The notes under the pieces are model-generated. The model did no database searches, was not told where the DNA came from, and worked only from the letters and a program-made list of their open reading frames with translations. Position numbers and translations under genes: made by a program. 64,000 nucleotides of DNA, taken from assembly GCA_977017575.1 (NCBI GenBank), contig CDRNVI010000045.1, positions 1 through 64,000 on the forward strand, read 5' to 3'. This document shows, one piece after another, positions 15,671-38,491 of this stretch; positions within the stretch are counted from its first letter, which is position 1, and every line of letters begins with the position of its first letter. Source of the stretch: Paramoeba atlantica (Eukaryota > Protista > Discosea).

Positions 15671-16260
15671 ATGTGCGCCTCCCTTCCCTCATCTCCCAGC
15701 ACCCCGCTCGGAACACGGTTCCGAGTCCCCATGCGCTGCAGGACCCTACTACGGGACCACGCGGCGTGCCTTCACTATCCGGCGACACCGGTACTTCTGC
15801 GCGTAGGAAGCTTCCATATACCGGAAGTCTCCCACACGGCGAGCAAACACGTTGTATGCGTGTTCTAGAGGATGTTCTATGCACCTCCCTTGCTCACCAG
15901 CCGTGGCGGATTCTGTGGGACCCCGATGCCTATGATGCATCATGAACCATGACTCCATTTGCCAGCATGCATCCATGGCCCTGACCATGTTGTATCATGA
16001 ACCATGGAAGTCATTTGTAGCATGTACGATGGGAATATCATCCGCGTCCCACAAATCCGTATATCTTTCCTGGCGCACTGCGCTTACGAAACATCTCGGG
16101 ACATATTATCCCGATGAGGCCGTCTCTTTTCGCTTTCCTGGGGAGGATATCCCGCGCTTTTCCCTGTGTTGCCTCGGAAGGCGAAAAGGTCCAGCAGGGA
16201 GCGTTGATTGCGCTTACCCCTGCTCGACCTAATTATCTCTACAGGTACTGCCCTGTATGA
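15671..16260 (+). mobile_element. Non-autonomous retroelement E (SINE-like), related to C and carrying the 3' tail of element B; 5' boundary approximate
   Basis: 15841-16040 shares blocks with C (acacgttgtatgcgtgt, atgatgcatcatga, catgaaccatgg, tgtagcatg..cgatggg); 16188-16258 aligns to the B 3' UTR (ctctacaggta.tgccctgtat). Confidence 0.7.
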
Positions 16261-17262
16261 ACAAGCAATTAGGAATCATTTTTCGTTTTCTATAGACTAG
16301 GGGGACCGCAGGTCGCGGGTTCGGTGCGAATTCGGCGCGGGTTCGGTGCGGGTTTGGCATCGGATCAGGCCTTCTCAAGCTCAGGTCAACTTGCAGAAAA
16401 CTAACCAAAGGAGAAACAATGAAATTTCGTACGTAGTATAATTGCAGTGTTAGATGGTTCATTACAGTTTTAAGAGCGAAGCGCGGTGGTACTTGTTTTG
16501 TTGGATGTGGCATTGTTTTGTGCGGAAATCGTCTTGTGTGCGTAGTTTTGATTTTCTTTGAAATTCATTGAGATTTAGTTACTTTTAGGATTTTTTTTGA
16601 AAATTGAGGAAATTTCGTTCAATCTGGCCCCATTATGTACATTTCATCCGAAAAATGCGAAAAAATGCCCCGAAAAAAGTCGCAATTAGCTTTTTTGACC
16701 CCTACCTGGCTAGGGGGGTAGGGGGTCGCTCGAGTGAAAAGGACCTCGGATTCGGAACGATTGGGTCGAAAAACGGTGTTATACCAAATATTTCCAAAAT
16801 CGGACAAAATACAAGACCTGTAGGGGAGGGGTAAAAGAGGCTGAACACCACTGTACATGTATGCGTATGTAGAAAGTGTGCAAATATTAAGTGGGAGGAA
16901 AGTTTTCATTTCTTCTTATTAAGTGGGAGCGGGGTAAATTCGGTAGCTTGGCCACTGTAATAGAGTCAATGCTCTTATAGACTGTAGCACTATAATAGTG
17001 CTATTCCACACAAAATGTTCTGGTTCTAAATGTTTTTCCGTTCTTCTGGTATAAAACTACTATTTTAAAATGTGAGACTGTATGTGCATGAACATACAGT
17101 ATTTCAACGTACATTTTCTACGTGTGTACATTAATAATTTCTCGAAAACATTGGCCTCCCTGCCATTTCCTTCTGCCTCCCTTCTCCACGCCTTCCGACG
17201 CATTCACATTTAAAATCATCGACGACATTCTAAATACCAGGTACTTTAACGCCGTTTTTTTT

Positions 17263-18270
17263 TCAAAATTTAAACACCTGCTCCTGTGTATATCCCACAT
17301 CGCGGAGATGTCCCGTAAGGCCACCCTGGGCCGGGGGAAACACCGACCCGTCCTTTCCCCCGCACACATCCTCCATCATCCCGGGAGGACCGCAGACAAA
17401 GATTTTTACTTTTTCCCCGAGCTGCGGCCCGGGAAGGTACGTTCGAATCTTCTCTGCATCCACACGACCACGCAGCCCTTTCCATTTCCCCTCTACTTTC
17501 GTCTCTTTTGTCACGGAGAGATGAAGATGGAGATTTTGTGACTTTTCTTCACACTCTCGTAACTCCTTATAGAGCAACATATCCTGCTCCGTGTGACACG
17601 TATAGAGCAGATGAATTTGTGTCGTATCTTTTGGATTTTTCACCACGGCATCTAACAGCTGAAACATTGGAGTAATGCCGGTACCCCCGGCAATCATACC
17701 GATGGTTTCCCACTGATTGGCTTGGTATTCAAATTTCGGAAACGGTCCCTGGACCTCAACGGTGTCTCCGAGCTCCCGTTTAAATAAATAAGAGCTCATT
17801 TGTCCTGTCGGATAGTGTTTGATGACAAGATCAAGATACCCAACGGTTTCTGGGGGACTCACGGGGGTGTAGGGCCGTATCACATATTGTTTCTTCTCGG
17901 TATGATTTGATTCCACGTTATTGAATTCTTTGGGACAACGCAAACAGATACAACTCGCCACTTTAAGCCCACTGCATTTGTCGGGAAAAGGAAACGCTAA
18001 TCGAAATCGTTTCGTGTCGGGACTTTCTTGTTGAATCGAAGCAATGGCGAAGTTTTGGTAAAGTTTTGGATTTAACGCCTGGGTAGGGGATGAAGAGGAA
18101 ACAGGAGCGGGAGAGGGAGGGGGAGAAGAGCCAAAAGCTCGGGTTATGGAGAGACGGTGAGAAAGTGTACGGTACACTAGATTCCAGAAAGGAAATGTAG
18201 TGGCAGCAACACCCAGGAGAAGGGGCGCAGTAAGACGGGAATCAGCAAGTCGTTTCATAAAAAACAGCAT
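17263..18270 (-). CDS. NADH-cytochrome b5 reductase (MCR1-like)
   Basis: VIRPYTPVS, IKHYPTGQMS, GMIAGGTGITPMFQL, IFVCGPPGMM, C-terminal QVFKF. Confidence 0.93.
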   Translation of the reverse strand: MLFFMKRLADSRLTAPLLLGVAATTFPFWNLVYRTLSHRLSITRAFGSSPPPSPAPVSSSSPTQALNPKLYQNFAIASIQQESPDTKRFRLAFPFPDKCSGLKVASCICLRCPKEFNNVESNHTEKKQYVIRPYTPVSPPETVGYLDLVIKHYPTGQMSSYLFKRELGDTVEVQGPFPKFEYQANQWETIGMIAGGTGITPMFQLLDAVVKNPKDTTQIHLLYTCHTEQDMLLYKELRECEEKSQNLHLHLSVTKETKVEGKWKGLRGRVDAEKIRTYLPGPQLGEKVKIFVCGPPGMMEDVCGGKDGSVFPPAQGGLTGHLRDVGYTQEQVFKF

Positions 18271-19210
18271 AAGACGTGTAAAGTGTCTGGAGTTCGCAAA
18301 GAGTGAAACGTGTAAAATAAGATGGGGTGAAATTTAAGGTAATTCATGGGGCTCTCGCGAAGGTGTTGATCTACGTAGGAACACTCCAAAATCAAATCCA
18401 AATCATTCCGGATTGCTCCGGACGGTCACTGGCAAGCCAGACCCTTCAGACAGATTTGTCCCGAGGCCGTCCTCTACCAGTTTCCGCTTGCCCACGGCGG
18501 CACCAACATGCTGTTACCAACACGCTGCGTTGACAAATTGTACGTCAACACGGCTTACCCAAGAGGTGTAAGACGGGTAAGGGAGCTGGTTCCCTGAGGG
18601 GAGGGTCCGGGACGGTCCTCCGAGTACTGGGCTTAGTTGGTTGTCAGCCTAGCCTCTTAGAGTGAGGCCTCCATGAATATTGCTATGAGAGGGTTGAACT
18701 TGAAAACTTGTACTCGCCGTCTGAGCACCGTGTATTTCAAACTTTGAATTCTTCCATTCCGCGACCTCAACTTTTAAGCCCCAGCTCCCTTCTCGGGAAA
18801 CGGGGACAAACGTAGGAACACTGAGAAAGGGTAAAAAATAAACTTTCTGATACCTTAGCTTATTTCTTTGTTTCCCTCCAGGGTGACATCTGCCTTTTTA
18901 ATATTGGTTTGTTTGACCTACTTTGCGAAACTACTCTTTCCCTTCACAAAATTTGTTGTTCATGCAGTCTTGCTGCAGAGATACCTGCTAAAGAGATAAT
19001 AAATAATTTTTTTTACCCAATACATGAACAATGAAGGTCCATAGGGGAGGGGGTGCATATTTGAAAACAAGCAACTATATAAATTTTTAAGCCCAAAACT
19101 AGCAATTGTATGTAAAACATGCCGCAAACATGGAACACTAAAAATAATAACAGAGAAGAAAGCAATACAAGCCATTCGCGCAGGTCTTTTTAATAAATAT
19201 AAATTTTTAC

Positions 19211-19700
19211 CCCGCATACGACGGGTCTCTCTTTCGCTTTTGCCTTCCTCGCTAGAAGTGCACCATCGCTACCCAGTTTTGCAAGTTTTTTCCCATGTGC
19301 AGCTGCCATGTTCTCTTTCACGGGCACGTTAGCTCTATAATAAATTCCGTGCCGTTGTGGAGTCATACCCACCCATCTGGATTTAGTTCAGTTCCTGATA
19401 GCCAGGATGTCGGTTTCCGGTACAGGTCAAGGTCGAAATGGGTTTGCGCTGTCGTCGGGCAGCTGGATACAGCATCAGCTAGCGTCACGAGCACCAAATT
19501 GTGGCGATAGGTGTATCATCCTTGTTCCAGGGAGACTCGACAGCCAGCAAGTATGTGGCGGATAGTTTGGACTTCCTCATTGCAAATGGGACACTTCGTG
19601 TTAACATGCGTGTTTAGGCCCCATCTATAAAGTCGGGCACATAGTGTAGGTTTCACTAGCATCCTACATGAACATTACCATTTTCCGGAAGAGAGAGAAA
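19211..19700 (-). pseudogene. Decayed 3' fragment of a HERO/NeSL-like retrotransposon (knuckle, REL, 3' hairpin)
   Basis: KCPICNEEVQTIRHILAGCRVSLEQG*YTYRHNLVL and PDGWV*LHNGTEFIIELTCP; ends at cccgtcgtatgcggg. Confidence 0.8.
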
Positions 19701-19923
19701 TGAAGGGAAGTCAACGGAACGGTTGCAGTTTACAGTTTTATCCTTTTACACCCGCGTGGAGCACCCGCACGGGTACCTACGCGGAAAGTGCGGAGGTCAC
19801 ATCTTATCGGAGACAAACGGACCGGACTCGAAAACCACAACATACGACCGTACGCTAGAAAAAGAAAAAAAAAGGACCGGCTTCACGAAGCCTCGTGTCC
19901 AAGGTTCCATCGAAAATAACAAT

Positions 19924-20257
19924 TACTCCCCCCCCCCTCTATTTAATAAGACTCCGATTTTGGGCAAAAGGTCCTAATAAAGGGGGGGACATGTAAAATA
20001 ATACGAAAGAAAAAAATCGGCGCCCCTTCGCGGCGCCTTTTTTATCGTTGTGAAACAAGGTCTTACTCCCTTTTGATACACTTTTGGTTGTTGGGCTAGA
20101 TACGAAAAAAAAATCCGCCGCTTCGCGGCGCATTCGACAATTTTTTGGCACTTTCCCTGAAATCTTTTTTGGCCTTCCAGACAAAATGGCCCTATTAAAG
20201 GGGGGGGTGACACGGAGCCCTATTAACTAGGGGGGATAGTAAATAGGGGGGGGGGTA
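19924..20257. mobile_element. MITE with C/G-run termini
   Basis: tactcccccccccctctattta ... taaatagggggggggggta; internal repeats of gcgccccttcgcggcg. Confidence 0.6.
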
Positions 20258-20285
20258 GAGCGGTCACAATTAATTAGGGAAGTGC

Positions 20286-20326
20286 AGTACTATAGCCAGA
20301 TATCACTTATGAATCTACAATGTTCT
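20286..20326. repeat. 41-bp imperfect direct repeat downstream of the LRR gene (partner at 21265-21305)
   Basis: 34/41 identity counted by eye (agtactatagccaga..atc...tatgaat.taca..gttct). Confidence 0.75.
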
Positions 20327-20421
20327 AATAATAGCAGAAAAAATCACTCGTGAAGAAAACAACATCTCCATTCAGGTTGAATGACTCAACATCAACTTCT
20401 CTAGGGACTCTCTTTCAGAGT

Positions 20422-21222
20422 CTACTCAGAGTCTGAGAAATACCACGTTTCTAATATCTTCAAGGTTAATGACTGGTGGACCTTATCATCAATATCTGGA
20501 TTATCGTCTACGGACACGTCCTTTATTGACATAGGGAGATGATCGCAACACACATCGGAGAAGCAATTCCTGCTGCAATTCAGCACTTCCAGAGACTGTG
20601 GCAAAGCGTGCAGCGCAAGCTGTCCTGAAAATGAATTTTCTTGCAAATGAACGATCTTAATTCCGCTGGGGAAATGAGAAACATCAACAACCCCGGAGAA
20701 CCGATTCCTGTCGAGCTCCAAACGCAGCATTCTTGGGGGTAAATGTGCAAGATCTACGTTTCCTTCAAATAAGTTGTCGGCCAGCGTAAGCATTCTCAAC
20801 GTTTGCGGCAATTTCGCCAAATTTATATGCCCAGAAAACTTGTTGTTTTCAAGTGACAGGACTAAAAGTCCCAGTGGCAGTTTATCAAGCGCAACCGGAC
20901 CATGCAATTTGTCCCCGTTCAACCAACATACCACCGTTGTTCGAGGCAAGTAAGTGAAGTCAAGTGTCCCCCTCAGATCCAGGTCACTAATAGACAAACG
21001 TGAAACGGATTCTCCATCCTCGCACAGGACACCGTACCACAGGCACGCTGAGTTTGAAATATTCCACGTGAAGTGGGGCTTCTCAATATTTTTGAAAAAC
21101 TCTGCAAGTTCACATTCCTGTGGCACATTTACTCCTCTTCGAGCCCTTCCCAGGCGTGAATGTTCTCCACTGGCTGGCACGTCGAATGCGTAGTGTAGCA
21201 TGCAGAGTTGGTTGTACATCAT
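20422..21222 (-). CDS. LRR protein of the expanded family
   Basis: NVPQECELAEF...SACLWYGVLC...LPQTLRMLTLADNLFEGNVDLAHLPP. Confidence 0.8.
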   Translation of the reverse strand: MMYNQLCMLHYAFDVPASGEHSRLGRARRGVNVPQECELAEFFKNIEKPHFTWNISNSACLWYGVLCEDGESVSRLSISDLDLRGTLDFTYLPRTTVVCWLNGDKLHGPVALDKLPLGLLVLSLENNKFSGHINLAKLPQTLRMLTLADNLFEGNVDLAHLPPRMLRLELDRNRFSGVVDVSHFPSGIKIVHLQENSFSGQLALHALPQSLEVLNCSRNCFSDVCCDHLPMSIKDVSVDDNPDIDDKVHQSLTLKILETWYFSDSE

Positions 21223-21264
21223 AAATATTGTCAGTCTGTATTTCTCTAGTAGAAAACTCTAGAT

Positions 21265-21305
21265 AGTACTATAGCCAGACATCGAATATGAATTTACAGA
21301 GTTCT
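21265..21305. repeat. 41-bp imperfect direct repeat upstream of the LRR gene (partner at 20286-20326)
   Basis: Direct comparison with 20286-20326. Confidence 0.75.
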
Positions 21306-21612
21306 GAAAGTAGATTCGCTATACAGAAAACAATTCTGTATTTTTTTCTGTATTACACATGGGAAGAAAATGGTGTTTCCATTAAAGTTGAATGGATTCA
21401 ACGTCAATTTCACTCCCTAGTGCTGTGACAGAGTCCCGTGACAGAGTGCAAATCTCGAGCTTAACTGCCAAGACCACGGTGACACGTCGCAGAGGGCCTT
21501 CTGTTTTATGTACAGGCGTGAAAAAACTCGCTTTAAGACGTTTCTACCGCGCATCATCCCTCTACGATCCTGTTCCAACGTGTTTCTACGTTCCACCGCT
21601 ACCCCCTCTGCC

Positions 21613-24600
21613 TTACCCCTCCTGTTTGTCCAGCCGTGCGGTTAGATCCTTCATGTACACCTCCCATCGCCGACAGTCCCTGTCGCTGGAGTTCTTCAAA
21701 ATATCCGACTCGCACTGCTGCAGCCTGCGCAGCAACGCACGACTCCCGACTCGCGTGTGGTACATCATCGCGAGCACGGGAATCACAAACCCAGGAGAAA
21801 GCGTGTTATTCCGGGCGGATGCTGTCGCACGGCTCCGGTGCCCCCCATCCTGCTCCCCGGTGAGCAAAATCGTTTTCATGGCACGAAAAAACAATTTAAT
21901 CTCCTCCGGGCCCATGCGCATACGCACCCGCGCAAACACATCCAGGATTTGTGCAATTGTAAGCAGCGAGAACGGGCGGATTGGGGCGGCTTGGCGTTGT
22001 CGAATGCGCCGGGGGGCGCGCTGCTCCGGGTTCGACCCCTCACGTAGGCTCAGGGTCTCGTCCAGGGCTTCCCATTGGCGCAGTACAAACACACACCAGC
22101 GGTGAACGATTTTCGAGTCCGGACAGTACCGGGTCTGGTTTACCGTAACAAGAAAATCCGTAGCTTGATCCGGGGTGAAGGGGAGTTCTCGAGGGTAGGG
22201 CTTTCCTATGGGGGTCGGCGTGTAGGACGGAGAACCCTTATTCAATTCGGTACGAGATTCCCTATCTGATTGTGCAGATGCCTCATCATTCGATTGCTGC
22301 CCCTCTCCTTCCCACCCCCACTCTTCCGACTGACGACTTGTGTCCCGCCGCTGTGCATCCGCTCCATACGTAAAAAACTCTCCCAATTCATTTGTCTTTT
22401 CTTCTTCCTGCGGGATTTTATTCGGAAACCGCGTAAGCTCCACGGCGCGATCCAGCAGCAGTCGCGAGGCCTCCGCATGCAGCGCACGAATCTTATCCCC
22501 CCCTCTCCACGTACGACAGCGTTGCATCCCGAACAGACAGTTGGCAATATGCGGGGGCTGGAACTTTTCGCGTAAAGCGCGGTCGTTGTAAATACGAGAT
22601 ACAAAGGGGAACAACTCCGCAGGGCTCACCAGCAGCAGGCCTGCATTCATTAAACAAAGCGACAGGACCGCAGGGTCGAGACTCGCACACGTCTCGGGAT
22701 CACTCAGGCGACGCAGGTTACCGACCACGAGATCCGGGGGGACATTACCCCCCTTGGACTTCGCCCACGCCAGAACTTTCATCACACGACACAGCTGGGT
22801 GCTGTCAAGATCACTTAGCGGAACTTTCCTCATCTTCTCTTCCTTTGTTTTCACCAACTCCGCTTCCCCATGTAAGGCTGTGTTGTTTTCACGGGTCTTT
22901 TGCTCACTTGTTTTGTGTATGCCCTCTCGCGGCTCTTGTTCCTTTGAACAGGAAAATTCCCGTAACAACGCACAAATCCGATCCCGGGGCTGAGAGGTAT
23001 GCATGGCAGAGTTTAACACCAGCACGAGGGTCTGTGCGGTCCACGGCTGTGTCTTCGAGGCCTGTACACAGGACTCAAACATCACCCCTGCGTCCCGAGG
23101 GGACATGATCCCCAAAATCGACCCGGAGGAGTACATATGGGCCATATCAAACAGCGTCCCCTCCCGTAGGTGTTCCGGGGAGAGGTGATCTAGAAACGCC
23201 CGTAACCAGGCTCGTGTATTGGGGTAATGCCCCGCACGGTGATAGGCGCGACTCCCCCCTTCCGCGTTCTCCAAACACCCGCCCTGCTCCTGCCTCCAGG
23301 GGAGCCCCAGCAAGTGTCGCCTGCGCTCCAAATAGGCGAAAGCATCCCCGAGTCCTGAGACCATTAGATTAATATAGGTGGGCTGCTTTCGGGATAACGA
23401 CGGGAGCACGCCTTTGTCCACGATCGCGTTAGCTTCCTCGGTAACGACCGCTGAGAACAATTCTAAAATCCGTACACGAATGAGATCGACTAAATCGGCA
23501 TGGACAACCCCCGCTACGGTTTTTTCACTTGCACCCGCATTTGTGTTTGCATTCGTTTTCGCCTTTGCATTAGTCTGCGGATATAAAACCGGATCCTCCC
23601 AGCTTTGTTCTTTCACCAACGGCCGGAGTGTGTCTTCGATTTCACTATACCAATTTAAATGGGGCGCTTTTGCGGCGGCGCTTCGGTAGCTGTCGGTGCG
23701 TCGTAACAACGTACCCATGTCGCACGATAACGGGGCCACGGTGTGATGTTCTAACACTTCCAATAGAGGAAAGATAAAACAGGCCGGGGCACCTTGGCTT
23801 AAGGCCCCGGAGAGAACTTGAATAAGTTCATTGGGGGACCAATCCAGACACATCTTTTGGGGGAGGTAACGCGGGGGGACGGAATTTCGGATTCTTGGAG
23901 ATGAAGAAGACACTGACCTTGAATTTGAATTCTCCTCTTCGGCGAACATCACTTCCCCATTCATTGTCTCCTCCGGAAGAGAAATATCCGGGGAGGTGTT
24001 TAGAAAATCACTCTGGTCATTTTCAACATCACCACCATCACCCGACAAAGAGGACGAATCCCCTCTCCACCCCACCCCCTCCCTCTCCCCTCTTTCCTCA
24101 TCTCCCCCACCAGATGAACCTTTGTTCATCTCTGTTCCTGATCTCCCCACTGTTGTACCCCCACCCTCCTCCAACCCCTTTCTCAACTCCTGCGTCACCC
24201 AATCCAACACCAGTGGGGTTAACCCCACACACGCCGCGGGGGCCCGGGCCCACGATGTGGCACACTCCGCCACCATCGCACGGGTCACCCAAGGGCTGCC
24301 CCCACCCCCACTACCCCCACTCCCACTACCCCCACTCCCACTACCCCCACTCCCACTACCCCCACTCCCACTGCCACTCCCACTGCTACGGCTCCCACTC
24401 CCATTGCCACGGCTCCCACTCCCACTGCCACTGCCCCTGCCGCCACTGCCACAGCGAGAGGCAATGGCTTGGGCTAAGGCGGTGAGGGGGGAGGGCCGCA
24501 GAGCGCTGCTGGGGGGGTGGGAGGGGCCGAGCCGTAGCAGTGAGGTGAGCACACAGCTGGCTTGGTGGGGGGAGTACTGCGGGGTGAGCTCGGGGAGGAG

Positions 24601-25074: not shown

Positions 25075-25352
25075 TGTAGATGAAAGGTTACAAAAAAACA
25101 GGGCGTTGGTGCAGCTGTAGAAAAGAGTTATGGATGACTTCTTTGGACAGAGAGCCTACAAATAAGTAAATTCCTTCTCTACTACAATAGAACAACAATA
25201 ACATTCACGATATACAATAACAAAGTATGATTACACGTTTGAGACACGAGGCATGAACCAAACGTTGGCCCTGCGTTCATTCCTACTTTCATAAGATCCT
25301 TAAAAAGAATGGTCCTGAGAAACGAGCTATTTGCTACAAGATAATAAGGTTC

Positions 25353-26228: not shown

Positions 26229-26449
26229 TTTTTAAGCTCCGTGATTTGTGCCCAAATCGAGGATAGGAGGGGGGCTGGACCCCCTTTCTCACCCTGCTGG
26301 ATCCACCCTACCCCGGATACCATAAAGAAGGGAGAGGCAGAGGTTGTAAACAACCCCCGCAATCTCACTCTTAATTAATGTTTTCACGGCGTCGTGATTC
26401 TTCGCTTTTCAAATTCAATATACAATGGAATTCTTAAAATTAGTTCGCA

Positions 26450-29039: not shown

Positions 29040-30074
29040 TGAAAACGTGGGGCAATCTAATAGTGTTACATGTCGTATCTGTGGCTCAGAGCCCGAGACC
29101 TTGAGACACGTATTATCACGCTGCAAAATATCGCATGACCAAGGGCGATATATATATACATGTATTTTTACATGTATATATATATCGCCCTTATGTATAT
29201 ACATGTATTTTTACATGTATATACATATCGATGCAACAAAGTGTTACGCATCATCGCGAGAGCAGTTGCCATCCCTCCCCGTACCTCCTGGTCGTCCTTC
29301 GATCTTCTGAGTCTCAGGAACCCCCCGGGATGGTGCCGCCATCATGGTGGGACGATTTTGACACCACTGTGTCCCGATGGTCTGGCCCAACTCAATGATG
29401 GAACTGAGTATATCGTTGAGCTTACCGCCCCTTGGGAGGGCAACTTTGCCGAAGCGCACTGTCGCGAAAAACACCAAAATTTGTTGCATCGGTGGCGGAT
29501 GACCCACCCAAACACGTATCTTCTATGCGCGGAGGTGGGCGCGAGAAGTCTTCCGGCTTCTTCTCTTACCGTATATCCCCCGGTAATAGAATCGGTTTTG
29601 GACCCAAATAACCCATCTCTGTTACTTGCGGGGATATGCTTTTTTTGGGGGGGGAAAAACCTTTTTTGTTCATATGTGCGTTGATTTTCTGCCCAGGCAA
29701 CGCCGCAACTACGCCATTCGTTCCCGCGCAACCACCCTCATCCGGCCCAGCGACCCCCACCCGACCAAACACCCCCTCCCCCCTCCAACCACCCTCCCCA
29801 GCCAATTCTCTGTTACTGGGGATCAGCCCAAAAATGGCCAAATCTCTGGTACCGGGGGGTATACGGTAGACAGTTAACCCGCCTTTTTGGGGATGTAAAC
29901 CGGTTCTCCATGTCGTGCCAATATGAAGTCATACGCGAAGCAATTCGCAGTGCCTTCGTTCTTTGGCTCATCCGTGAGTCTCCCGAATGGAAAGGGGGCG
30001 GATGGGCTAGAAACGACGCCCATGCGAGGTCGTCGTATGCGATATTCACATACAGGGTGTACATTACTCTACAG
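29040..30074 (+). pseudogene. 3' fragment of a HERO/NeSL-like retrotransposon, interrupted by a palindrome and a MITE
   Basis: TCRICGSEPETLRHVLSRCKISHDQGRY; PDGLAQLNDGTEYIVELTAPWEGN; after the MITE, RQLTRLF...EVIREAIRSAFVLWLIRESPEW; hairpin at 30029 and attactctacag at 30063-30074, as in the B tail. Confidence 0.85.
29567..29868. mobile_element. MITE family 2 copy with TA duplication
   Basis: TA|CCGTATATCCCC ... GGGGTATACGG|TA; removing it restores tct ctt aga cag tta (SLRQL) in the host retroelement frame. Confidence 0.85.
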
Positions 30075-30184
30075 ATTTTTCTGCATTGAATAAAATAGAT
30101 GCATGTTCCGAAACATTTTGTTTTTACATGTTACATGATTTTTCTTGCATGTTATATGATGTATTATGAAATGGTACGTGCTGA

Positions 30185-31057
30185 TTAAGGAGGTAGTGCC
30201 TTTTGCCAATGCATTTTGACATGTTTCTTCCCATAGAAACGGGCCATGGGACATTCCTGTTCAACGGCTTTGCCCAATGTCTCAATTTGCTTGGTCGTCG
30301 CCGCTGGCGCCTGAACCTGAACGTGGACCTCAGACCCCTTGACGTCAAAGCGAATGTCCTCGACCTTGACATTCATACGAGACGCGATTTGATGGGCATG
30401 ACTGGTTGAGCACATTTCCAACATCTTGTTGAAAATTGCGCTAAAAGGACTGAACCGTCCAGGCGACTGACTTCCTCCACTGGCGTCATTTGCCGATCCT
30501 GAAGAAGCGCTCGACCCAGAATTCTTCACTGAAAATGGCGAACTCGCCGCGCTCGTATGAAATAAGGAGCTAAATCGAGATGATTTCACGAATGTTTTTT
30601 GTGTTCCTGGTGCACCGGGGCGAAGGATATCCGTTAGACTACTTACTAAAGGCTTTTGTTTGTACGACGCAGAACGTGGCCCTTCTGTATCAGCCAGGTA
30701 TCTCCAAGCAGATTTTACGGCTTCTTTCGCCATACTGAGCTCACGTGGGGCAAACTGAGCCAAGAATCTTGGGGTCTGTATAGAATCTCGAGTTGAACCA
30801 ATCTTGTTTAAATAACTGCGAAGAGAGGGGTGATTGCGCAATCCTTGCACAGTCTCCTTAAACATTTGTGGCACTCCTCTCACCCATTCAAAGAAAGCAT
30901 CAAAGTCACGTACCTGTTCAGTTTTCTGATGTCCAGTACCAGTATAGAATACTCGAGCTATCATGTATGGGCGACCATATCTCTGCGTTGAAAGCTTGCA
31001 ATAACGGCATGGTGACTCGGCAAGAGATTTAGTACATTGCCGGCTCACGTAAATCAT
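30185..31057 (-). CDS. OsmC/Ohr-like domain protein (true start uncertain)
   Basis: C-terminal MLEMCSTSHAHQIASRMNVKVEDIRFDVKG...LGKAVEQECPMA with the two Cys in OsmC-like spacing. Confidence 0.5.
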   Translation of the reverse strand: MIYVSRQCTKSLAESPCRYCKLSTQRYGRPYMIARVFYTGTGHQKTEQVRDFDAFFEWVRGVPQMFKETVQGLRNHPSLRSYLNKIGSTRDSIQTPRFLAQFAPRELSMAKEAVKSAWRYLADTEGPRSASYKQKPLVSSLTDILRPGAPGTQKTFVKSSRFSSLFHTSAASSPFSVKNSGSSASSGSANDASGGSQSPGRFSPFSAIFNKMLEMCSTSHAHQIASRMNVKVEDIRFDVKGSEVHVQVQAPAATTKQIETLGKAVEQECPMARFYGKKHVKMHWQKALPP

Positions 31058-31935
31058 TTTGGTCGGGCAGTATTACCCAAAACGCTGAATTCCTCAAATG
31101 CTTTTGCGTAAATTTTGTTTTAGTTTATGCACGAAATTTATTTTAATCAATGATTACTCTTAATCTAAATAATATGTCCTAGATAGTGTCTTTACCAAAG
31201 TGAGATGTGAAATAAAGGACAAACCCTTTTACCATTTGCGATTACACCCCTGTTAATATATTTCTGTAAACGAGACATTTTGTAAATGGGACAAAAACTA
31301 GGTAAAACGGTTTCCAATTGGTAGTCTATGGTCACCATACGACAAAGCAAGAATTGTGACTAAAGCGAAACAAATGTAACTGTCTAGTAATTTTCTAGTC
31401 CTACAGCAAATTCAATGAGCTCCAGACAGAAAACGTTGAATACTAGAATAGTATTAAGAATATTTAGAATAGGTGTAACTGATCGTCTAAGCAAGTGTGT
31501 ACGTGATTCAGCAAATGCAAGCTTTAAATAAATACAATTAAACAATAATATAGTATAGACAAGTTTACCATTGTAGACAAGAGTAAGCAAGTAACTCAGC
31601 TTGAAATTCATATCTACACCTACTGTTTGAATAGGTGACTCCACACTATCGCCTTATTAGTTGATGTTCTCACTTAGATACGAGACGTTTCCCAATATAC
31701 TCCCCCATAGGTAAGCGTGGAACACTTTGTTCGATCCATCGTCTGGGAAGCTTTTGTTTGGGATAGATTACAGCCTCGAATAGATTGTCCAGCAAATCCA
31801 GTTGCAAATTCCGCGCATCCCTTCCCATATCATGTAAGTTTAAGTAACCAGAAAACCGATTTCTGCTGAAGTTCAAAATCTCTAACGAGTCAGGAAGATG
31901 CTTCACATCTAGCTCTCCAAAAAACAAATTCTCGC

Positions 31936-32542
31936 ATGGTCATGATCATACGCTCGTGGCGCAGAGATACGTCTCTCTGTGTGACGGCCGATACCATCGG
32001 CGCATGACCCGCATACGACGGGTGTCACACAGAGAGTGGAGTGCGAGGTAGGAGACGAGACGCCCATCGGTCATGCTACAGCACGTATAGCCATGGTTCA
32101 TGCTGCAACACGGTCAAGCCGTGGGTTCATGCTGTCAGATGGTCTATCGTGGATCATGATGCATCATGGGGAGGTCCGTTACCGCCGCACTCGCTACAGC
32201 ATGTAGGGAGAGAGGGGTGCAAGTTCGCATCCCCTATACACGCATACAACGTGTCCTCCCGCTGTAGCACGCCCAGTGGTCCTCAAGGGAGGCCACCATG
32301 GCGCATAGCTCCCGGGAGAAGAAAGCACGAGAAGGAGAGAGCCGGGGAGGGAAGAAAGCTCACTCGAAGAGAGCGATCCGGGGAGGGGTGAAGAGTGCGA
32401 AGTGCGTCCCCTACTTCCGCGACAAAGAGGGACAGTTCCAGCTAGCCGTCAGCCGGAAACGGGCATTTAAAAGTAAGAATATGCCCGTTTCCGGGAAAAG
32501 AAAGGAAGGGCTCAACAAGGTATAGAAACTGTATCTTTATTT
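31936..32542 (-). mobile_element. Non-autonomous SL-capped retroelement C (607 bp)
   Basis: Starts AAATAAAGATACAGTTTCTATACCTTGTTG; no ORF; LRR frame resumes at 31935; the empty site (38261-38280) implies a 3-nt deletion; homologous to D and E. Confidence 0.85.
32513..32542 (-). other. Spliced-leader exon 3' fragment (30 nt)
   Basis: AAATAAAGATACAGTTTCTATACCTTGTTG; compare the kinetoplastid SL end CAGTTTCTGTAC+7 nt ending TTG. Confidence 0.75.
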
Positions 32543-33274
32543 GATTGAGACTTATAAGATCAGGAAGTTTTGTCAAGTCTACAGAACCAGTTAACATATT
32601 CGACTGCAGCGATAACTGCCTGATACGAGCCGGAAGGTTTTCTAAAGTTATGGTGCCGTTAAAGTTGTTGTTATCCAGACGCAGAAAAGAAATATTCCGA
32701 GGCGATGCGTCAAGGGCTAAAGTCCCCGAGAGTAAGTTGCCGCTCACACTCAATTGCTTCAAATAGGGAGAAATCAATGACAAATCTAATTCACCTTCAA
32801 AAACGTTACTGTCCAGACCTAGATGCGTAAGTGAACGTGCCAAACTATCCAAAAGTATATTGCCTTTGAAAAAGTTTCTATGGAGACTCAAATACTTTAG
32901 ACTTTGAGGTAAATTACCAAATTGTAGGTTCCCACTGAGTGAGTTACATGATGGAACGCTGCAGGAGTTCCATTTTTACTGGTAGTGTTGATAAATCCAG
33001 TGGCCCAGTATGTGCATGAAGAAAGAGCGATGAGCATTCCAACGAGGCGGCAAATGAAGTTTTGGAATAGTCCCATGCAAGTTCCTCTTCCGTCCTGAAG
33101 GAACATCAGCTGAAAAATAAGAGAGTTGAATGGGCTTGGCATGCCAAGTAAGATTTCCTTTCATGATAATATCATTAAAGAAAAGAAAAAATATCCGCAT
33201 GCGTTCATCACAATTAACTCCTTCCCATTGAGCATGCAAAAAGAGCATGAATAGGGGGAGTGTGTACGATGTTC

Positions 33275-33475
33275 TTACTCAGATACGAAATGTTTGTCTA
33301 GATATTCACGCATGGATAAGCGCGGAACACTTTGTTCGATCCATCGTTTTGGAAGCTTATGTTTGTGATAGATTACAGCCTTGAATAGATTGTCCCGCAA
33401 ATCAAGTTTCAAATTCCGCGTATCCTTTCCTATATCATATAAGTCTAAGTAACCAGAAAACTGATTTCTGCTCAA
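33275..33475 (-). pseudogene. LRR gene copy X, 3' piece
   Basis: LSRNQFSGYLDLYDIGKDTRNL...KHFVSE*, near-identical to the end of 51359-52531. Confidence 0.9.
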
Positions 33476-33565
33476 TTTAATTTATCATACCTTTATAAGG
33501 CAGAGAATATGCGGATAGGCCTGGGGGGCGCATATGACGCTGCCCAGACCTATCTTTTACAGACG

Positions 33566-35962
33566 TTATACCCGTCCTTCTGTCCAAACGGCAGACTCGC
33601 GGTTCTGCCAGATAATGAAACTGCCTCGAAGGGCGGTCTGCATTAGACTTTCTCGACATTTTTCCGCAAGCTTTGTGTCCTCGTCAAAGAGGAGGTTGAG
33701 GTTTCGACAAGATGTGAGTAACGAGCCGCGGGCTCCCACTTCGAATACAACAAGGGTCGTCCTAGGGTGATTAATGCGTCGTTCATGGAAGAGAGCATTA
33801 TATTTACGGGATTTGCCCTCGTGCGCCTGAGACTGGTTCTCTTCCCAGGGCACAGTGAGCTCAATGATGAACTCACTTCCATCCTTAAGTGTAATCAAAC
33901 CGTCGGGGCGAAGAAGGTCCTCACGGGTGCCGAGCCATGCCGGGGCATTCCTAAATCCGGGGATATCTAGGTGTACGCTCTTGGTATACGGCGAACGCAG
34001 CAAGTGTTTTCCGAGCTCTTCAAGTAACATGTCATGACGGAGGGTGTATCTCCCTTGCTGAAGGGACTCTTTGCACCCCGAGAGCACGTGCCTTGTTGTT
34101 TGAGGTTCGAGTTTACATATGGGACATGTTACACTCGCACGCCGCAGACCCCAAAGCCGAAGATTGGTTCTGGATGGTAGGGGTGAAAGCGTTAGTACTG
34201 AAGCTGCGAAGCGATAAAGTTTTTCACTGTTGAGGTTGTTCAGGGCCGCTGAGAACTCTTTCGCGAGATCAGCCTCGGAGGGGAGGCTCCACCATTTTGC
34301 TGCTGTCGGTGCCCGTCTCTGAAGCTGATTTATGACGTAAGATTCATGGTTATCACGGGCTATCTGTTGCGCCTTCCGCGCGTCATGAAGGTGTTGAATG
34401 GCGTCAGCGCTTGGACGAATATAACCAGAGGATCGTTTTTCTTCTTCTTGCTTGATTCGGGCTCGTAGTGCCGCCTGTATCGATGGGTCCCGCGACTTGT
34501 GCATCTGTGTTAAGGCTAGGATAGAGCATTCGGACCACAGCTTGGATAAACTTTTAAGGTTCCACCCTCGTTCAGTATAAAGAATTTCGGTGCAAGTCGT
34601 GGATGCTGCATTGATCCATTTCTTAAGGTGACGTGTAATTCTTTTCTGCAATCGCAATACAAAGTTGAAAGTGACACACGGGTGAACGGTGAGGGCGTAG
34701 CGCAGACGGGATACGATCGCTCTGTTGTAGATCCAAAGTTTTTCGGGGAGACTGTGTGCACTCTCGTCGACATTCCGAAGCCATGTTCTTAGTCTGACAT
34801 CCAGCTTTTTGAAAAGTTCTTTCGCTTGCTGTGCTCCTGGTGCTATGGTCATTCCAAGAAAAGTGCTTCCACGGTCACATATATGTGGTATCGCTTTGCC
34901 TTCGATACTGAGTCTCGGCTTCCTGGTCATGTAACCCGGGTGCTCACTGCCTTCACGCATGGACATGCACTGTGTACGGCTCTTGTCTACGTTGATTGAG
35001 AGTCCTATTCGTCTCAGTGCAGTTTCGAGTGTGTTGGTCGCGTGCTGCATGTCGGTATCGCTGCTAGTCAGTATCGTCAGGTCGTCAACGTAGGCTTTCA
35101 GGAAATGCCTTGGAGTATCTGGGTAGTCAAGGCCATACCGGGGGCACGATTGCTTGAGGTATCGTAGTACAGTTTCCATCACTAAGTTGAAAATTATGGG
35201 CGACAGGGTATCACCTTGTAGTACGCCTCTGTGTATCGGTATAGCACGTGACAAACCTTCGACACACTTAATACGCATTTCCGCATGTGAATACATGCTT
35301 TCAACGTAGGACACGATTTGTGGCGAGACGTTTGCCCATCGCAGTGCCTCGAAGATGATGTTATGGGGGACCGAGCCGAATGCATTGCTGAGATCAAACT
35401 GCGTGAGACAATATTGCCTTTTGTTTCGGCGGTAATATTGTAGTATTTCGGATAGAGCTTGCGTGTGTTCCAGTGTACCACTCATCTTCGGAAGAAAGCC
35501 TTTTTGAACGCTTGTATCTAGGAGGCCGGAGGACACGGTATGCGTCAAAATTTGGTGTCCGATCATGCTATTGAAAAGTTTGCCTAGAGCGCTAGTCAGG
35601 GAGATAGGTCTCCAGTTTTTCGGGATGTGTTTTTCGCCTCCTTTGTGAATGAGTTTAACTACGGCGGAGGACCAGCATGGCGGGCAGACGCCGTAGCGCA
35701 GAAGATCATTAAACGTGTTCGCTATACGGGGGTACAGGTATTTGCATTGTTTTAGAAGTGCGTTTGTAATCGTATCACGCCCTGGCGCGCTTGCGCTTCT
35801 TTTGCTGCTGAGCGCGTCTGCGACATCTTGCGCGGTCAGTGGAGACCATTCCATTTCGTTGATGGGTAGAGGACCAAGTACGTTGTTCGGCGGCAGACGA
35901 ACGCTTCGGCGGGAGGTGCTGTGCTTTCTGTGAAATATTTTTCTATCGTAGGTAAATCGCAT
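33566..35962 (-). CDS. Element A RT, CCHC knuckle and REL endonuclease (C-terminal part of a frameshifted single ORF)
   Basis: KNWRPISL, QKGF, QFDLSNAFGSV, GVLQGDTLSP, AYVDDL, CPICKLEPQTTRHVLSGC..QGRYTLRH, RPDG...IIELTVPWEEN...K..KY, FEVGARG. Confidence 0.9.
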   Translation of the reverse strand: MRFTYDRKIFHRKHSTSRRSVRLPPNNVLGPLPINEMEWSPLTAQDVADALSSKRSASAPGRDTITNALLKQCKYLYPRIANTFNDLLRYGVCPPCWSSAVVKLIHKGGEKHIPKNWRPISLTSALGKLFNSMIGHQILTHTVSSGLLDTSVQKGFLPKMSGTLEHTQALSEILQYYRRNKRQYCLTQFDLSNAFGSVPHNIIFEALRWANVSPQIVSYVESMYSHAEMRIKCVEGLSRAIPIHRGVLQGDTLSPIIFNLVMETVLRYLKQSCPRYGLDYPDTPRHFLKAYVDDLTILTSSDTDMQHATNTLETALRRIGLSINVDKSRTQCMSMREGSEHPGYMTRKPRLSIEGKAIPHICDRGSTFLGMTIAPGAQQAKELFKKLDVRLRTWLRNVDESAHSLPEKLWIYNRAIVSRLRYALTVHPCVTFNFVLRLQKRITRHLKKWINAASTTCTEILYTERGWNLKSLSKLWSECSILALTQMHKSRDPSIQAALRARIKQEEEKRSSGYIRPSADAIQHLHDARKAQQIARDNHESYVINQLQRRAPTAAKWWSLPSEADLAKEFSAALNNLNSEKLYRFAASVLTLSPLPSRTNLRLWGLRRASVTCPICKLEPQTTRHVLSGCKESLQQGRYTLRHDMLLEELGKHLLRSPYTKSVHLDIPGFRNAPAWLGTREDLLRPDGLITLKDGSEFIIELTVPWEENQSQAHEGKSRKYNALFHERRINHPRTTLVVFEVGARGSLLTSCRNLNLLFDEDTKLAEKCRESLMQTALRGSFIIWQNRESAVWTEGRV

Positions 35963-38151
35963 TCAGGATATTCGGCGGTGGCGGAGGTCGAGGGGCGGTC
36001 CAAGGCCTCGGATGCTGCTGTCCACGGGTTCCGCGTGAATCTGCTATGGGCCCATTGTCTTTCTAGCTGTTTCCTATGTGCTTTGGCCTCTTCTGTGTAT
36101 GTTTTCTCTAGCTTCTCACTTTCCTTAATGCAGCGACGGAGCTCTTGGCGTTCCGTTCCGTGTGTGTAGCGTAGTGATTTCTTTTGGTTGCGTATGTGTT
36201 TCGTCATTTCGTGGGCTGCATTTTCAGACGAAAGTGGCCGGTGCTTGAATCGGGCGTGTCCGCGTTTCGATCGCGTGAGGAAACCTTTAGTGGGGTTAAT
36301 CTCTTGTGCAATTTCGTATGCCGCCACTGCCAGAGAGGCACCCAGGAGTTCTGCGTTTTTCACTGCGATTTCCGGGGTGTCTACTGTTGGATATTGCAGC
36401 CTTCGGCATGTATCGTATGCCTTGTTTTCAACCGCCTTCCATTGATCGTCGTTAAGCTTTAGGCACATTTTTCCCCCTGTTATGGTTTTGTGTTGTTCAA
36501 GCAGATGGAGGCGTTCCCTTTCGCTGGTTTCATCCCATGATGGAACTCGAAGTTCCGTAGTGTGCGAAGGAGGAGGAAGAGGAGAAGGTCGGACGAGGGG
36601 CTCATTGTACCTAAGCGGTCCATATATCTTACAGCATTTATGCAGACAGCGTAGCTTGGCCGAGCATCGGTGACGACATGGTTCCACGTGTATGGTGTTC
36701 TGTGGGTAATGCGCTGCACTGCTAGGCGTCGCGTCAGGGAGTGGCGCAGGGTTGTGCATAGTGCTATCTTTGTTGTCAGTGCACGTCGCATCCGTGATTT
36801 GCACAGTATGTTGGTTCCCGTTTGTTGGTCCGTTGATGCTAGTATTGGGAAGGCGGTAGAAGTTTATAACGTTACGCATGGCCCAACCAGCCAATTTAGC
36901 AGCTTTCCGTAGGAAATCACTATCGTTGTCGTTGAGGTTTGGTGTTACGGAGTTCTGGTTGACGTCGGCCCCCTCTGTTTGGGTTCCCTCGGCAGGTGGG
37001 ACCATTTGGACATCAGGTGGAGGTTGTGTTGCCGGGTTTAACCCTCGTTCTAAAGTTGTGTGAGCGCCCTCCCGTGATATTGCGTTGCATAGCTTCGTTT
37101 GTAGATTTTCATTTGTAGAAGTCGCGGAAGTTGGAAAGTCCAGATGCGAAGATTTAATGCCTCGTTTACAACATAGATGTCCGCACGTAGCTTTGTTCTT
37201 GCAGGAATGACGACATGGATGCGGGGCGGAAGGTTCATCATGTACGGTAGGTTTGCGGTGACCGTTCGACGCATGTGTGTTGCATTTTGTATGTGTCGCA
37301 GGTTCCGAAGAGGTGCTTTCCGGCGTATATTTACTTGGATCTCCTGGGTTGGTGTTATTTGCAGTTCCTTCTGGGACGATCTCAGTTGGCAGTGCTCCTT
37401 CTGATGAGCAATATGTAGCGTCCTCACTCGGCAGCGGTCCATAGATTTTACAGCACTTGTGAGCACAGGAGAGTTTGCTCAAGCAGCGGTGCTTGCATGG
37501 TCCCTTGTGTTGATCAGTTTTACCCTTCTGGGGCTTTGGCGTTCGTGGGGGAGCGATTTTATGAGGGGATTCTTCTATCCTGCGCGGCTTCTCGTATTCC
37601 GCGGTTTCAGTGCTTGGTGTTTCCTGGTTTCTTATGAGCTCGATTTTTATGTGCTTCAGTCCCGATATTTCTCTTCCCTGTATGGCCTTCAGGGCTGCCT
37701 TATTTAGCGTGCTTGGGGTGGAATACTTGTCTCGCAGGCTGAGGGCAGGGTCGGTGTGCATCGAGACCCAGTTTGGGTGCAGGGAGATGGTGTAGGGGTG
37801 TTCATTCCTCGTAACCTTTATATAGTCGCACGCGTTATGCTCCACGAGCTCCTCAAAGGTGGTGTGTTCAGCTACGAGATCGTGTGCTGATGCACACTTA
37901 CTCAGCAGTTTCGTGATAGCTACTTCCGCACCTTGTCGGGATGGAATTCTTTGTCTGACTATGGACCATTGGCTCGCGGTCTTAATGTCCGGGAAATACG
38001 TCCAATGCAGATCAGTGAGGCGTCGTATCTTAACGGGCCGTGATCTGCTGTGGACGAAGTGCAGGGTTTGCGTCCGTACGCCGCCGGAAGCTCGAGGGAG
38101 GTCCGGCAGCGCATCGTCAACATTCCGCGGAGAAGTGGGATTGTCGGACAT
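35836..38151 (-). CDS. Element A N-terminal part (true start MSDNPT at 38151) with 3 CxHxCxxKxxCxHxCCK fingers
   Basis: ATG 30 nt after the SL end; ends in RNPWTAAS...YP.C, which is contiguous with the RT in element B, so one frameshift lies near 35900-35930. Confidence 0.8.
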   Translation of the reverse strand: MSDNPTSPRNVDDALPDLPRASGGVRTQTLHFVHSRSRPVKIRRLTDLHWTYFPDIKTASQWSIVRQRIPSRQGAEVAITKLLSKCASAHDLVAEHTTFEELVEHNACDYIKVTRNEHPYTISLHPNWVSMHTDPALSLRDKYSTPSTLNKAALKAIQGREISGLKHIKIELIRNQETPSTETAEYEKPRRIEESPHKIAPPRTPKPQKGKTDQHKGPCKHRCLSKLSCAHKCCKIYGPLPSEDATYCSSEGALPTEIVPEGTANNTNPGDPSKYTPESTSSEPATHTKCNTHASNGHRKPTVHDEPSAPHPCRHSCKNKATCGHLCCKRGIKSSHLDFPTSATSTNENLQTKLCNAISREGAHTTLERGLNPATQPPPDVQMVPPAEGTQTEGADVNQNSVTPNLNDNDSDFLRKAAKLAGWAMRNVINFYRLPNTSINGPTNGNQHTVQITDATCTDNKDSTMHNPAPLPDATPSSAAHYPQNTIHVEPCRHRCSAKLRCLHKCCKIYGPLRYNEPLVRPSPLPPPSHTTELRVPSWDETSERERLHLLEQHKTITGGKMCLKLNDDQWKAVENKAYDTCRRLQYPTVDTPEIAVKNAELLGASLAVAAYEIAQEINPTKGFLTRSKRGHARFKHRPLSSENAAHEMTKHIRNQKKSLRYTHGTERQELRRCIKESEKLEKTYTEEAKAHRKQLERQWAHSRFTRNPWTAASEALDRPSTSATAEYPECDLPTIEKYFTESTAPPAEAFVCRRTTYLVLYPSTKWNGLH

Positions 38152-38180
38152 GTTGGAGATACAGTTTAGAAAAAAAAAAA

Positions 38181-38203
38181 CAACAAGGTACAGAAACTGT
38201 ATC
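38181..38203 (-). other. Spliced-leader exon 3' fragment at the 5' end of A
   Basis: GATACAGTTTCTGTACCTTGTTG, preceded by AA shared with the LRR flank. Confidence 0.75.
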
Positions 38204-38405
38204 TTCAGAACCTCCAACGAGTCAGGAAGATGCTTCACATCTAGCTCTCCAAAAAACAAATTCTCGCTGAGATTGAGACTTATAAGATCAGGAAGTTTTG
38301 TCAAGTCTACAGAACCAGTTAACATATTCGACTGCAGCGATAACTCCTTTATACTAGCAGGTAGGATTTCTAAAGTTATGGTGCCGTTAAAATCGTTGGT
38401 ATCCA
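38204..38405 (-). pseudogene. LRR gene copy X, middle piece between elements B and A
   Basis: DTNDFNGTITLEILPASIKELSLQSN...HLPDSLEVL, matching the intact paralog. Confidence 0.9.
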
Positions 38406-38491
38406 TTATTTATATCTATACAGGGCATTACCTGTAGAGTAATAAAGTCTAACAGGACGTACGCATATGACGTCGCCTGCTAGACCATTTG

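Follow-up and report, generated by a model that had tools for sequence, protein, structure and literature searches.

Retroelements of the window and their 3' module

The stretch analysed here, referred to below as the window, comprises 64 kb (positions 1 to 64,000) of contig CDRNVI010000045.1 from the Paramoeba atlantica assembly GCA_977017575.1. It carries long intron-less eukaryotic genes, and leucine-rich repeat (LRR) genes interrupted by retrotransposons that lack long terminal repeats (non-LTR elements). These elements, both those that encode a reverse transcriptase (RT) and those that are non-coding, share a 3' RNA module in which a small hairpin (hp1) is followed by a second stem-loop (hp3). 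The glycerol-3-phosphate dehydrogenase of the window has its best named relatives in Perkinsela and the prokinetoplastid PhM-4 (55-56% identity), and the host lineage appears to be a deep-branching, kinetoplastid-like euglenozoan. The 5' ends of the elements carry a kinetoplastid-type spliced-leader (SL)-like sequence, AAGATACAGTTTCTGTACCTTGTTG.

Three of the elements, B (44033..38406), A (38203..33479) and C (32543..31936), are minus-strand insertions in LRR gene copies at three different sites. Their boundaries were set by aligning the flanks to an uninterrupted LRR gene copy at 51352-52531 (minus strand). This last stretch was also considered as a candidate element and rejected: the flanks of A, B and C share host LRR sequence with it, and as an LRR gene without any insertion it represents the empty target. 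The elements of the window, with their open reading frames (ORFs), are as follows.

33479..38203, minus strand: autonomous element A, with an SL-like 5' end, ORF1 at 35836-38203 and ORF2 with the RT at 33566-35962
38406..44033, minus strand: autonomous element B, with ORF1 at 41925-43943 and ORF2 at 38492-41944 (RT, zf-RVT, CCHC knuckle and restriction-like endonuclease, RLE)
31936..32543, minus strand: element C, non-autonomous and 608 nt long, without a long ORF; its 5' end is SL-like
about 15640-16270, plus strand: element E, with a 5' piece and a 3' end that are B-like and a middle homologous to the middle of C
from 63718, plus strand: the only further C-like copy in the window, truncated by the window end

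Elements A and B each contain two overlapping ORFs with the RT domain in ORF2; ORF1 of A as listed extends past the element into the LRR flank, up to 38406. Pfam detects RVT_1 in ORF2 of both (E 1e-32 in A, 5e-29 in B) and no apurinic/apyrimidinic endonuclease (APE) domain. The best solved relatives of B ORF2 are R2 proteins (9nl3, 9dou and 8gh6, E 1e-31), and its alignment with 9nl3 runs from the RT to residue 1098 of 1150, including the CRxC..H..C and RPD..ELT.P.E..K..KY motifs. The family alignment shows hardly any change in these CCHC-knuckle and RLE columns. As judged from these sequences, the elements form a lineage of R2-superfamily, RLE-bearing non-LTR retrotransposons; they are not R2 proper, as they have two overlapping ORFs and insertions in LRR genes rather than in 28S ribosomal DNA (rDNA).

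Two further observations concern the elements as such. At the 5' junction of B (43987-44069, minus strand) about 40 nt of the LRR target are duplicated; the second copy continues into ...GAGTTTCTGTACCTTGTTG, and LRR sequence stands in place of the first part of the SL-like leader. This may reflect a template jump at microhomology (GAGCTTCTG versus CAGTTTCTG). A third RT ORF, at 9820-12555 on the minus strand (911 aa, RVT_1 E 1e-17), has T-rich and A-rich runs downstream and no module; it was rejected as a family member and apparently belongs to a different retroelement family.

Read 5' to 3', the module consists of an outer stem that encloses hp1 and often an inner hairpin (hp2), a UCUCU hinge, hp3, the sequence AUGA and about 10 A/U-rich nt. 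It spans about 85-110 nt across copies. In A and B it begins 5-11 nt past the ORF2 stop, with hp1 at 20-26 nt past the stop, and it nearly fills the 3' untranslated regions (UTRs) of 87 nt and 86 nt, respectively. The outer stems of these two elements are 10-12 bp long and unrelated in sequence, and B deviates from the consensus flanks of hp3, with ACUCU as its hinge and AUAGA instead of AUGA. In C and several relatives the first domain is Y-shaped, made of outer stem, hp1 and hp2. Predicted folds pair the UC of the hinge with the GA of AUGA, so that hp3 becomes a longer stem with a conserved internal loop, and they close hp1 with a U.G pair, which leaves a 5-nt loop within a conserved 7-nt box. 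None of the 3' junctions inspected has poly(A). The copies in the window are listed below with the folding z score and the score under the covariance model (CM) described in the next section.

33479..33554, minus strand: 3' module of A; outer stem 33543-33554/33514-33525, hp1 gCG-UCAUAUG-CGc at 33528-33540, UCUCU hinge from 33506, hp3 GCCUU/AAGGU, AUGA, tail to 33479; z -4.6, CM 60 bits
38406..38486, minus strand: 3' module of B; outer stem 38476-38486/38447-38456, hp1 aCG-UCAUAUG-CGu at 38461-38473, ACUCU from 38440, hp3 ACAGG/CCUGU, AUAGA, tail to 38406; z -5.1, CM 43 bits
31936..32036, minus strand: 3' module of C, Y-shaped; 13-bp outer stem, hp1 ACCCG-UCGUAUG-CGGGU at 32006-32024, hp2 GCCGAU-GGU-AUCGGC, UCUCU from 31967, hp3 GCGC/GCGU, AUGA, tail; z -2.9, CM 68 bits
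32190..32270, minus strand: internal Y-shaped module of C, tail-less; outer stems, hp1 ACACG-UUGUAUG-CGUGU at 32238-32254, hp2; z -4.0, CM 14 bits
15833..15906, plus strand: internal Y-shaped module of E, 71% identical to the internal module of C; hp1 ACACG-UUGUAUG-CGUGU at 15847-15863; z -3.9
16186..16270, plus strand: 3' module of E, B-like; outer stem AGGUC.AGCAGGG, hp1 AGCG-UUGAUUG-CGCU at 16199-16215, UCUCU from 16236, hp3 ACAGG/CCUGU, AUGA, tail, 85% identical to the tail of B; z -4.0, CM 47 bits
19189-19243, minus strand: hp1 of remnant F, CCCG-UCGUAUG-CGGGG at 19210-19226, no outer stem; CM 27 bits
18942-19028, minus strand: 3' tail of remnant F, UCUCU-GCAG..CUGC-AUGA at 18950-18981, 232 nt downstream of the F hp1; CM 35 bits
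30011..30104, plus strand: remnant G; hp1 GUCG-UCGUAUG-CGAU at 30028-30044, degenerate B-like tail ACUCU-ACAG..CUGC-AUUGA; CM 13.7 bits, E 0.7

Eight hairpin sites had been proposed from a sequence-only reading, and all eight are present at their positions and on their strands, in the autonomous elements A and B, in the non-coding C and E and in two fragments. That reading also described longer outer stems of unrelated sequence around the hairpin; these are found in A, in B and in both modules of C and of E (z -2.9 to -5.1), whereas the fragments at 19213 and 30031 lack them (z -0.07 and -1.5). From their sequence both fragments look like decayed 3' ends, and the hp1 at 30031 is followed by a degenerate tail, ACTCTACAG..CTGCATTGAA. 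An element D had been named alongside C and E as mobilised through the hairpin, but no hairpin is listed for it. As an account of the 3' signal, the hairpin turns out to be one half of a bipartite module, the better conserved hp3 with its UCUCU and AUGA flanks having been missed. Within the window, the second half alone, written as the pattern TCTCT-R-C..N..-Y-ATGA, finds A, C and E at their 3' ends and, in addition, a remnant at 18981 that had gone unseen. On further contigs from this genome it finds six element ends, and the ACTCT tails of B and of contig L007 were added afterwards.

Covariation, strand and specificity of the module

Further copies were taken from contigs L001-L005 and L007-L009 of the ENA assembly ERZ24900291, which belong to the same genome and were reached via their RT proteins. 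These contigs hold six more RT families (42-59% identity), so that the 3' stem-loop is found in A, B and six more autonomous families, and also further non-coding passengers. Every element end on them has the same 3' architecture with other stems and slightly different loops, as the following hp1 sequences illustrate.

L003: CGCG-UUGUGUG-CGCG
L002: GUGCG-UUUUGGG-CGCAC
L008: CCCG-UUUUGUG-CGGG
L004: CCCG-UUGUAUG-AGGG
L009a: CCCG-UUGAAUG-CGGG
L007: GCG-UCAUAUG-CGC
L009c: CCCG-UCGUAUG-CGGG
L005, minus strand: ACACG-UCGUAUG-CUUGU
L005, plus strand: AUCCG-UCAAUA-CGGAU

The claim that the third pair of hp1 takes all four Watson-Crick forms is borne out within the window: it is g-c in A; a-t in B and in the internal copies of C and E; c-g in the 3' copy of C and at 19213; and t-a at 30031. 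Among 16 distinct copies this pair is CG in six, GC in five, AU in four and UA in one, Watson-Crick in 16/16. Both CG pairs hardly vary, nor does the U.G pair that closes the loop, and the fourth pair forms in 13/16. The covariation score of hp1 is 0.356 versus 0.094 in shuffles (0/500 equal it), with 84% of cells paired in the true register versus 20-71% in slid registers, as expected of the covarying sense-strand RNA structure that had been proposed. With hp3 included, 12 modules have 95.4% of cells paired and double changes in 5/9 pairs, for a score of 0.621 versus 0.188 (again 0/500 shuffles equal). Stem changes are compensatory and tolerate G.U pairs. Between the internal modules of C and E, which are homologous and differ in their outer stems, hp1 is unchanged and the enclosing stems carry four compensatory double changes.

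A consideration that tempers these statistics is that the copies are related by descent, so that shuffles overstate their independence. Because shuffles ignore descent, the third pair was mapped on a maximum-likelihood RT tree, where it is a-t in B; c-g in L004 and L009a; g-c in A and L007; and g-c in L003, next to L002 (g-c) and L008 (c-g). The tree requires at least three independent double substitutions at this position. Loop sequence, too, follows the RT clades.

Folding agrees with the covariation. Minimum free energy (MFE) structures of A, B, C and E contain all three helices (outer stem, hp1, hp3), and the z scores of -2.9 to -5.1 given above include both C and both E modules. Ten modules on the other contigs have z scores of -0.9 to -5.3, 8/10 of them below -2.4, and in 9/10 the MFE structure again contains all three stems. 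The exception, L005 7550-7664, is drawn without hp1 or outer stem, and its Y shape comes from manual pairing. BLAST detects no similarity between the 3' UTR of A and that of B, though their RTs are about 55% identical, and against this background the conserved core stands out. We conclude with high confidence that the hp1-hp3 module is a selected RNA structure of the element 3' end.

Strand and frequency bear on the alternative that the motif acts as DNA, as a near-palindromic protein site or in second-strand priming, or is functionless inherited sequence. CATATG is indeed a DNA palindrome, and all copies come from a common ancestor. The exact motif CGTYRTATGCG, however, is strictly strand-specific: its seven matches in the window, against 0.08 expected from dinucleotide-preserving shuffles (0/100 shuffles reach seven), all lie on the sense strand of retroelements, as do the 12 that occur across 158 kb from this genome, and 190 kb of DNA from elsewhere contain none. 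The eighth site, in E at 16199-16215, has the variant loop TTGATTG; allowing one mismatch adds three matches only in the window, which is the chance level. A DNA-level or functionless origin also fits poorly with G.U-tolerant compensatory stem changes, with a core kept while the flanking 3' UTR diverged past BLAST detection, and with the covariation of three nested or adjacent helices, and we regard it as very improbable. Two sites on L003, at 1679 (CCCTCGTTGTATGCCCGG) and 8683 (CCCTCGTTATATGCCCGG), contain the loop box without the hairpin; they lie 7,004 nt apart, flank the L003 element and are probably within repeated host sequence.

A covariance model (R1) of the kind that the sequence-only reading had called for was built from the 12 modules, its annotation being limited to the pairs of hp1 and hp3. 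The outer stems stayed outside it, as their lengths and hp2 vary and MAFFT gives no column-by-column alignment; their support therefore comes from per-sequence folds and from the C/E internal pair. A scan of 168 kb (the window and the same-genome contigs) recovered the 12 training modules and the following left-out or new copies.

L009 10882-10992: left-out copy of C, 63 bits
L001 7451: left-out copy of B, 34 bits
L007: left-out copy, 20 bits
remnants F (35 and 27 bits) and G (13.7 bits): left out
internal modules of C and E: left out, 14-17 bits
L001 8489-8609: new E-like end, 17.5 bits

No significant match beyond sense-strand element copies was found in these 168 kb; one weak match lies on the opposite strand (L008 8666-8756, 12 bits, E 2.4). 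In 180 kb of control sequence around 51 metagenomic RT relatives (25-38% identity) R1 has zero matches even at E 10, and the exact CGTYRTATGCG is absent from these loci, whose 3' UTRs are longer and different. Rfam, ribozyme families included, has no match in the whole window at gathering thresholds. Over 31900-33600, which takes in the 3' ends of C and A, a search by E-value turned up nothing beyond a miRNA-like chance match to the opposite strand (E 0.88). A hammerhead-like CUGAUGA/GAAA core, sought by eye, is absent.

Several side observations concern the 3' ends and their more distant counterparts. In four distant relatives (L010 4830, L014 4947, L016 4872 and L039 3582) the 3' UTR opens with ACGCG.. 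right after the stop. In L010, L014 and L039, though not in L016, this extends to a GC-rich palindrome (ACGCG..CGCGC), which may be an analogous hairpin of different sequence. Within the family, the hp3 stem is often RCAG/CUGY: ACAG..CUGU in B, E and L005, and GCAG..CUGC or CUGU in L002, L003, L008 and F (sites inspected: 33479-33506, 38406-38440, 31936-31967 and 16236-16270; L002 8498, L003 8324 and L005 7589, minus strand). RCAG/CUGY is also the stem of the palindromic core of the SL-like sequence, UACAG-UUU-CUGUA. The element 3' end may mimic an SL-like target, and a 4-bp stem could also coincide by chance. Past AUGA, the tails of some families are short tandem repeats, (TA)n in L003 (8350-8400) and (ATC)n in L007 (4885-4903), which recall the 3' microsatellite tails of other stringent non-LTR elements.

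Non-coding passengers and their mobility

The module is common to the non-coding elements C and E, to C-like copies at L005 6704-6814 and L009 10882-10992, and to an E-like copy at L001 8489-8609. The copy number of C was gauged with Logan contigs of three DNA runs (X1-X3) of the same organism label, mapped on 31700-37699, with summed word depth as the measure.

LRR flanks: about 3 in X1, about 28 in X2
element A: 15-20 in X1, 200-480 in X2
element C: 124-567 in X1, 1,600-10,500 in X2

In X1 and X2 the depth of C (31900-32699) is about 6-35 times that of A (33500-37699) and 40-375 times that of the flanks, and the C family is far more repeated than the autonomous A, assembler word depth being a rough measure. 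In X2, a contig at flank depth runs from 31935 straight into 32543 save for three other letters, and this junction falls on the boundaries of C that the paralogue alignment had given independently. The X2 sample thus lacks C at this LRR site, a presence/absence polymorphism for which a near-identical paralogue is a less likely alternative. As C is high in copy number and missing from the site in another sample, it has been mobilised. Another X2 joint, 33475 to 32544, was set aside as a paralogous LRR copy with doubled depth and variants of its own. A possible RNA run yielded a single 153-nt contig on the C 3' module, with a foreign flank.

Two arrangements on the other contigs illustrate where passengers lie. 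On L009, three element 3' ends stand in tandem within 1.2 kb (10406-11570), and the C-like copy among them ends ...GATCATGACC and gives way directly to TACAGTTTCTGTACCTTGTTG, the SL-like start of the element that comes next. The arrangement points to head-to-tail insertion into or beside the SL-like sequence of a resident element. On L005 (6223-6240), a C-like passenger truncates the RT ORF of P0005, which matches A at 99% identity across half its length; from the premature stop it is about 10 nt to the SL-like 5' end of the passenger. Here the passenger is inserted into an autonomous element.

Role of the module and comparison with known systems

We consider it rather probable, by analogy with R2 and with stringent long and short interspersed nuclear elements (LINEs and SINEs), that the module is a two-stem-loop signal for RT recognition and for the start of target-primed reverse transcription (TPRT); this reading of its role in binding, specificity and initiation draws on that analogy together with the position, conservation and covariation of the module. 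The RT protein of the element would bind the two-stem-loop 3' RNA, making sequence-specific contacts to the hinge, to both CG pairs and to the conserved loop, with the variable stems giving shape. Binding would set the exact RNA 3' end in the active site, and TPRT would begin at the element boundary irrespective of the downstream transcript. The non-coding C and E would be copied in trans via the same module.

Several facts weigh against this proposal or limit it. The hairpin had been described as a 3' element; this holds for A, B and the 3' copies of C and E, but the internal copies at 32238-32254 and 15847-15863 lie about 230 and 350 nt from the 3' end, cannot be initiation sites there, and look like a duplicated first domain. 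The loop length, previously given as fixed at seven, is that of the box in most copies but not of the C-like copy L005 6721, which has six nucleotides (TCAATA), and the predicted U.G closing pair makes the loop one of 5 nt. One CG pair is broken in two relatives (L004 8809 and L005 7644). A simple cognate pairing of RT and passenger is not evident within the window: E has B-like flanks yet the loop UUGAUUG against UCAUAUG in B, and the loops of C (UCGUAUG and UUGUAUG) differ from those of both A and B. RT relatives with 25-38% identity are without the module, which is lineage-specific, and the likeness to R2 is one of architecture, not of RNA homology.

An alternative role for the same structure is that of a 3'-end protection or processing signal of a non-polyadenylated RNA, bound by a host factor as in the histone mRNA stem-loop; its conservation in passengers would then reflect RNA stability and not template choice. 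The 3' junctions without poly(A) and the terminal hairpin about 10 nt from the end fit this idea. Kinetoplastid mRNA 3' ends normally depend on downstream trans-splicing signals, and an autonomous end signal would be useful in such a setting. However, the loops track the RT clades, as expected for an element-encoded partner and not for a single host factor, and the cDNA must start at the element end anyway, a point set in R2-type systems by protein-RNA recognition (PMC11194090). The two roles are mutually compatible; as an explanation in its own right, we consider protection or processing unlikely.

The loop itself invites another reading, in which the self-complementary YRUAUG forms kissing-loop dimers of element RNAs and a passenger such as C is tethered by hairpin base-pairing to the RNA or ribonucleoprotein of an autonomous element. 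CAUAUG is a perfect palindrome; CGUAUG, UGUAUG, UGAUUG, UGUGUG and UUUGGG are self-complementary with G.U allowed; and the loop of A or B can form five Watson-Crick pairs and one G.U pair with that of C. In the alignment 95.8% of cells pair versus 88.4% in shuffles, with two double changes, a level that 6/500 shuffles match and that is also reached in unconstrained trials, which makes this weak signal a lead and not a result. Transitions from a palindrome retain wobble pairing half the time by default, and UUUGUG (L008), UGAAUG (L009 and L001) and the loop of six nucleotides break the pattern. Closure by the predicted U.G pair, moreover, would remove the last G of the hexamer from the loop and leave 5 nt. 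We rate kissing loops as doubtful, somewhat below protection or processing; if real, they would amount to a retrovirus-like dimerisation signal in a non-LTR retrotransposon. Pairing of the loop with other sequences was also tried and rejected as unsupported. With AUACA of the SL, UUGUAUG alone can form 5 nt of complement, a match that the CG and CA variants lose, so that covariation is absent; GUAUG is shared with the tail in the same sense, not as a complement.

The module offers a compact and sharply bounded ~85-nt candidate signal for RT recognition in an undescribed R2-like lineage of an early-branching kinetoplastid relative. Across its eight RT families the stems change in matching fashion and the loops are specific to the clade, a natural 'mutagenesis' that makes template choice and positioning by RLE retrotransposons, and the borrowing of the signal by non-coding parasites, directly testable. 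The question of template choice also bears on R2-based gene-insertion tools, and the covariance model is a precise annotation marker for these elements and their passengers in this genome.

Among known systems, R2 is the closest in architecture. R2 has SIDE elements, internally deleted non-coding derivatives that retain its 3' end. The elements described here resemble R2 in a protein that aligns from the RT through the CCHC knuckle to the RLE, in the lack of poly(A), in a structured 3' UTR and in non-coding derivatives that keep the 3' end. They differ in lacking RNA sequence similarity to R2, in a module of about 85-110 nt against about 250 nt in R2, and in having two ORFs, an SL-like 5' end and sites in LRR genes or SL-like sequence instead of 28S rDNA. 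The R2Bm protein selects its own 3' UTR, of which the minimal RNA consists of two stem-loops, a hinge and a single-stranded 3' tail; this RNA supports binding and TPRT, with stem sequence free and hinge and tail important for positioning (PMC11194090).

Recognition by the ORF2 protein of stringent LINEs is general for the stem and specific for the loop, and the tail recurs in their SINE partners (PMC4176376). The present elements are similar in that the stem covaries freely and the loop is conserved and clade-specific, and, as in UnaL2/UnaSINE1 of eel and ZfL2-1/ZfL2-2 of zebrafish, a 3' stem-loop is common to autonomous and non-autonomous elements. The UnaL2 and ZfL2 LINEs, by contrast, belong to the L2 clade, have an APE endonuclease and end in a single stem-loop followed by short tandem repeats, whereas the elements here have two stem-loops, a conserved hinge and an RLE-type enzyme.

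A third comparison is with CRE1/CRE2, SLACS, CZAR and NeSL, which share with the window elements a kinetoplastid-like host, an RLE-type enzyme and a close tie to SL sequence. CRE, SLACS and CZAR insert at a fixed position inside the SL RNA genes of trypanosomatids. In the window this tie takes another form, the copies being located in LRR genes with SL sequence as their own 5' end; on L009 the 3' end of a C-like copy directly adjoins the SL-like start of the following element. CRE, SLACS and CZAR are described as ending in poly(A), and no shared 3' hairpin is described for them in the literature searched. Relatives in other kinetoplastids appear, on sequence grounds, to be likewise tied to SL sequence. 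The metagenomic RT relative L013 (30% identity), for instance, has the 3' part of a canonical kinetoplastid SL, AGATACAGTTTCTGTACTTTATTG, about 50 nt past its stop (around 2765-2860), with TTTCTGTACTTTATTG repeated. The device is known in kind, being the 3' UTR template signal of R2-type or stringent-LINE elements whose passengers are SINEs or SIDEs; what is new, against Rfam and the literature searched, is the specific RNA, its host lineage and its element family.

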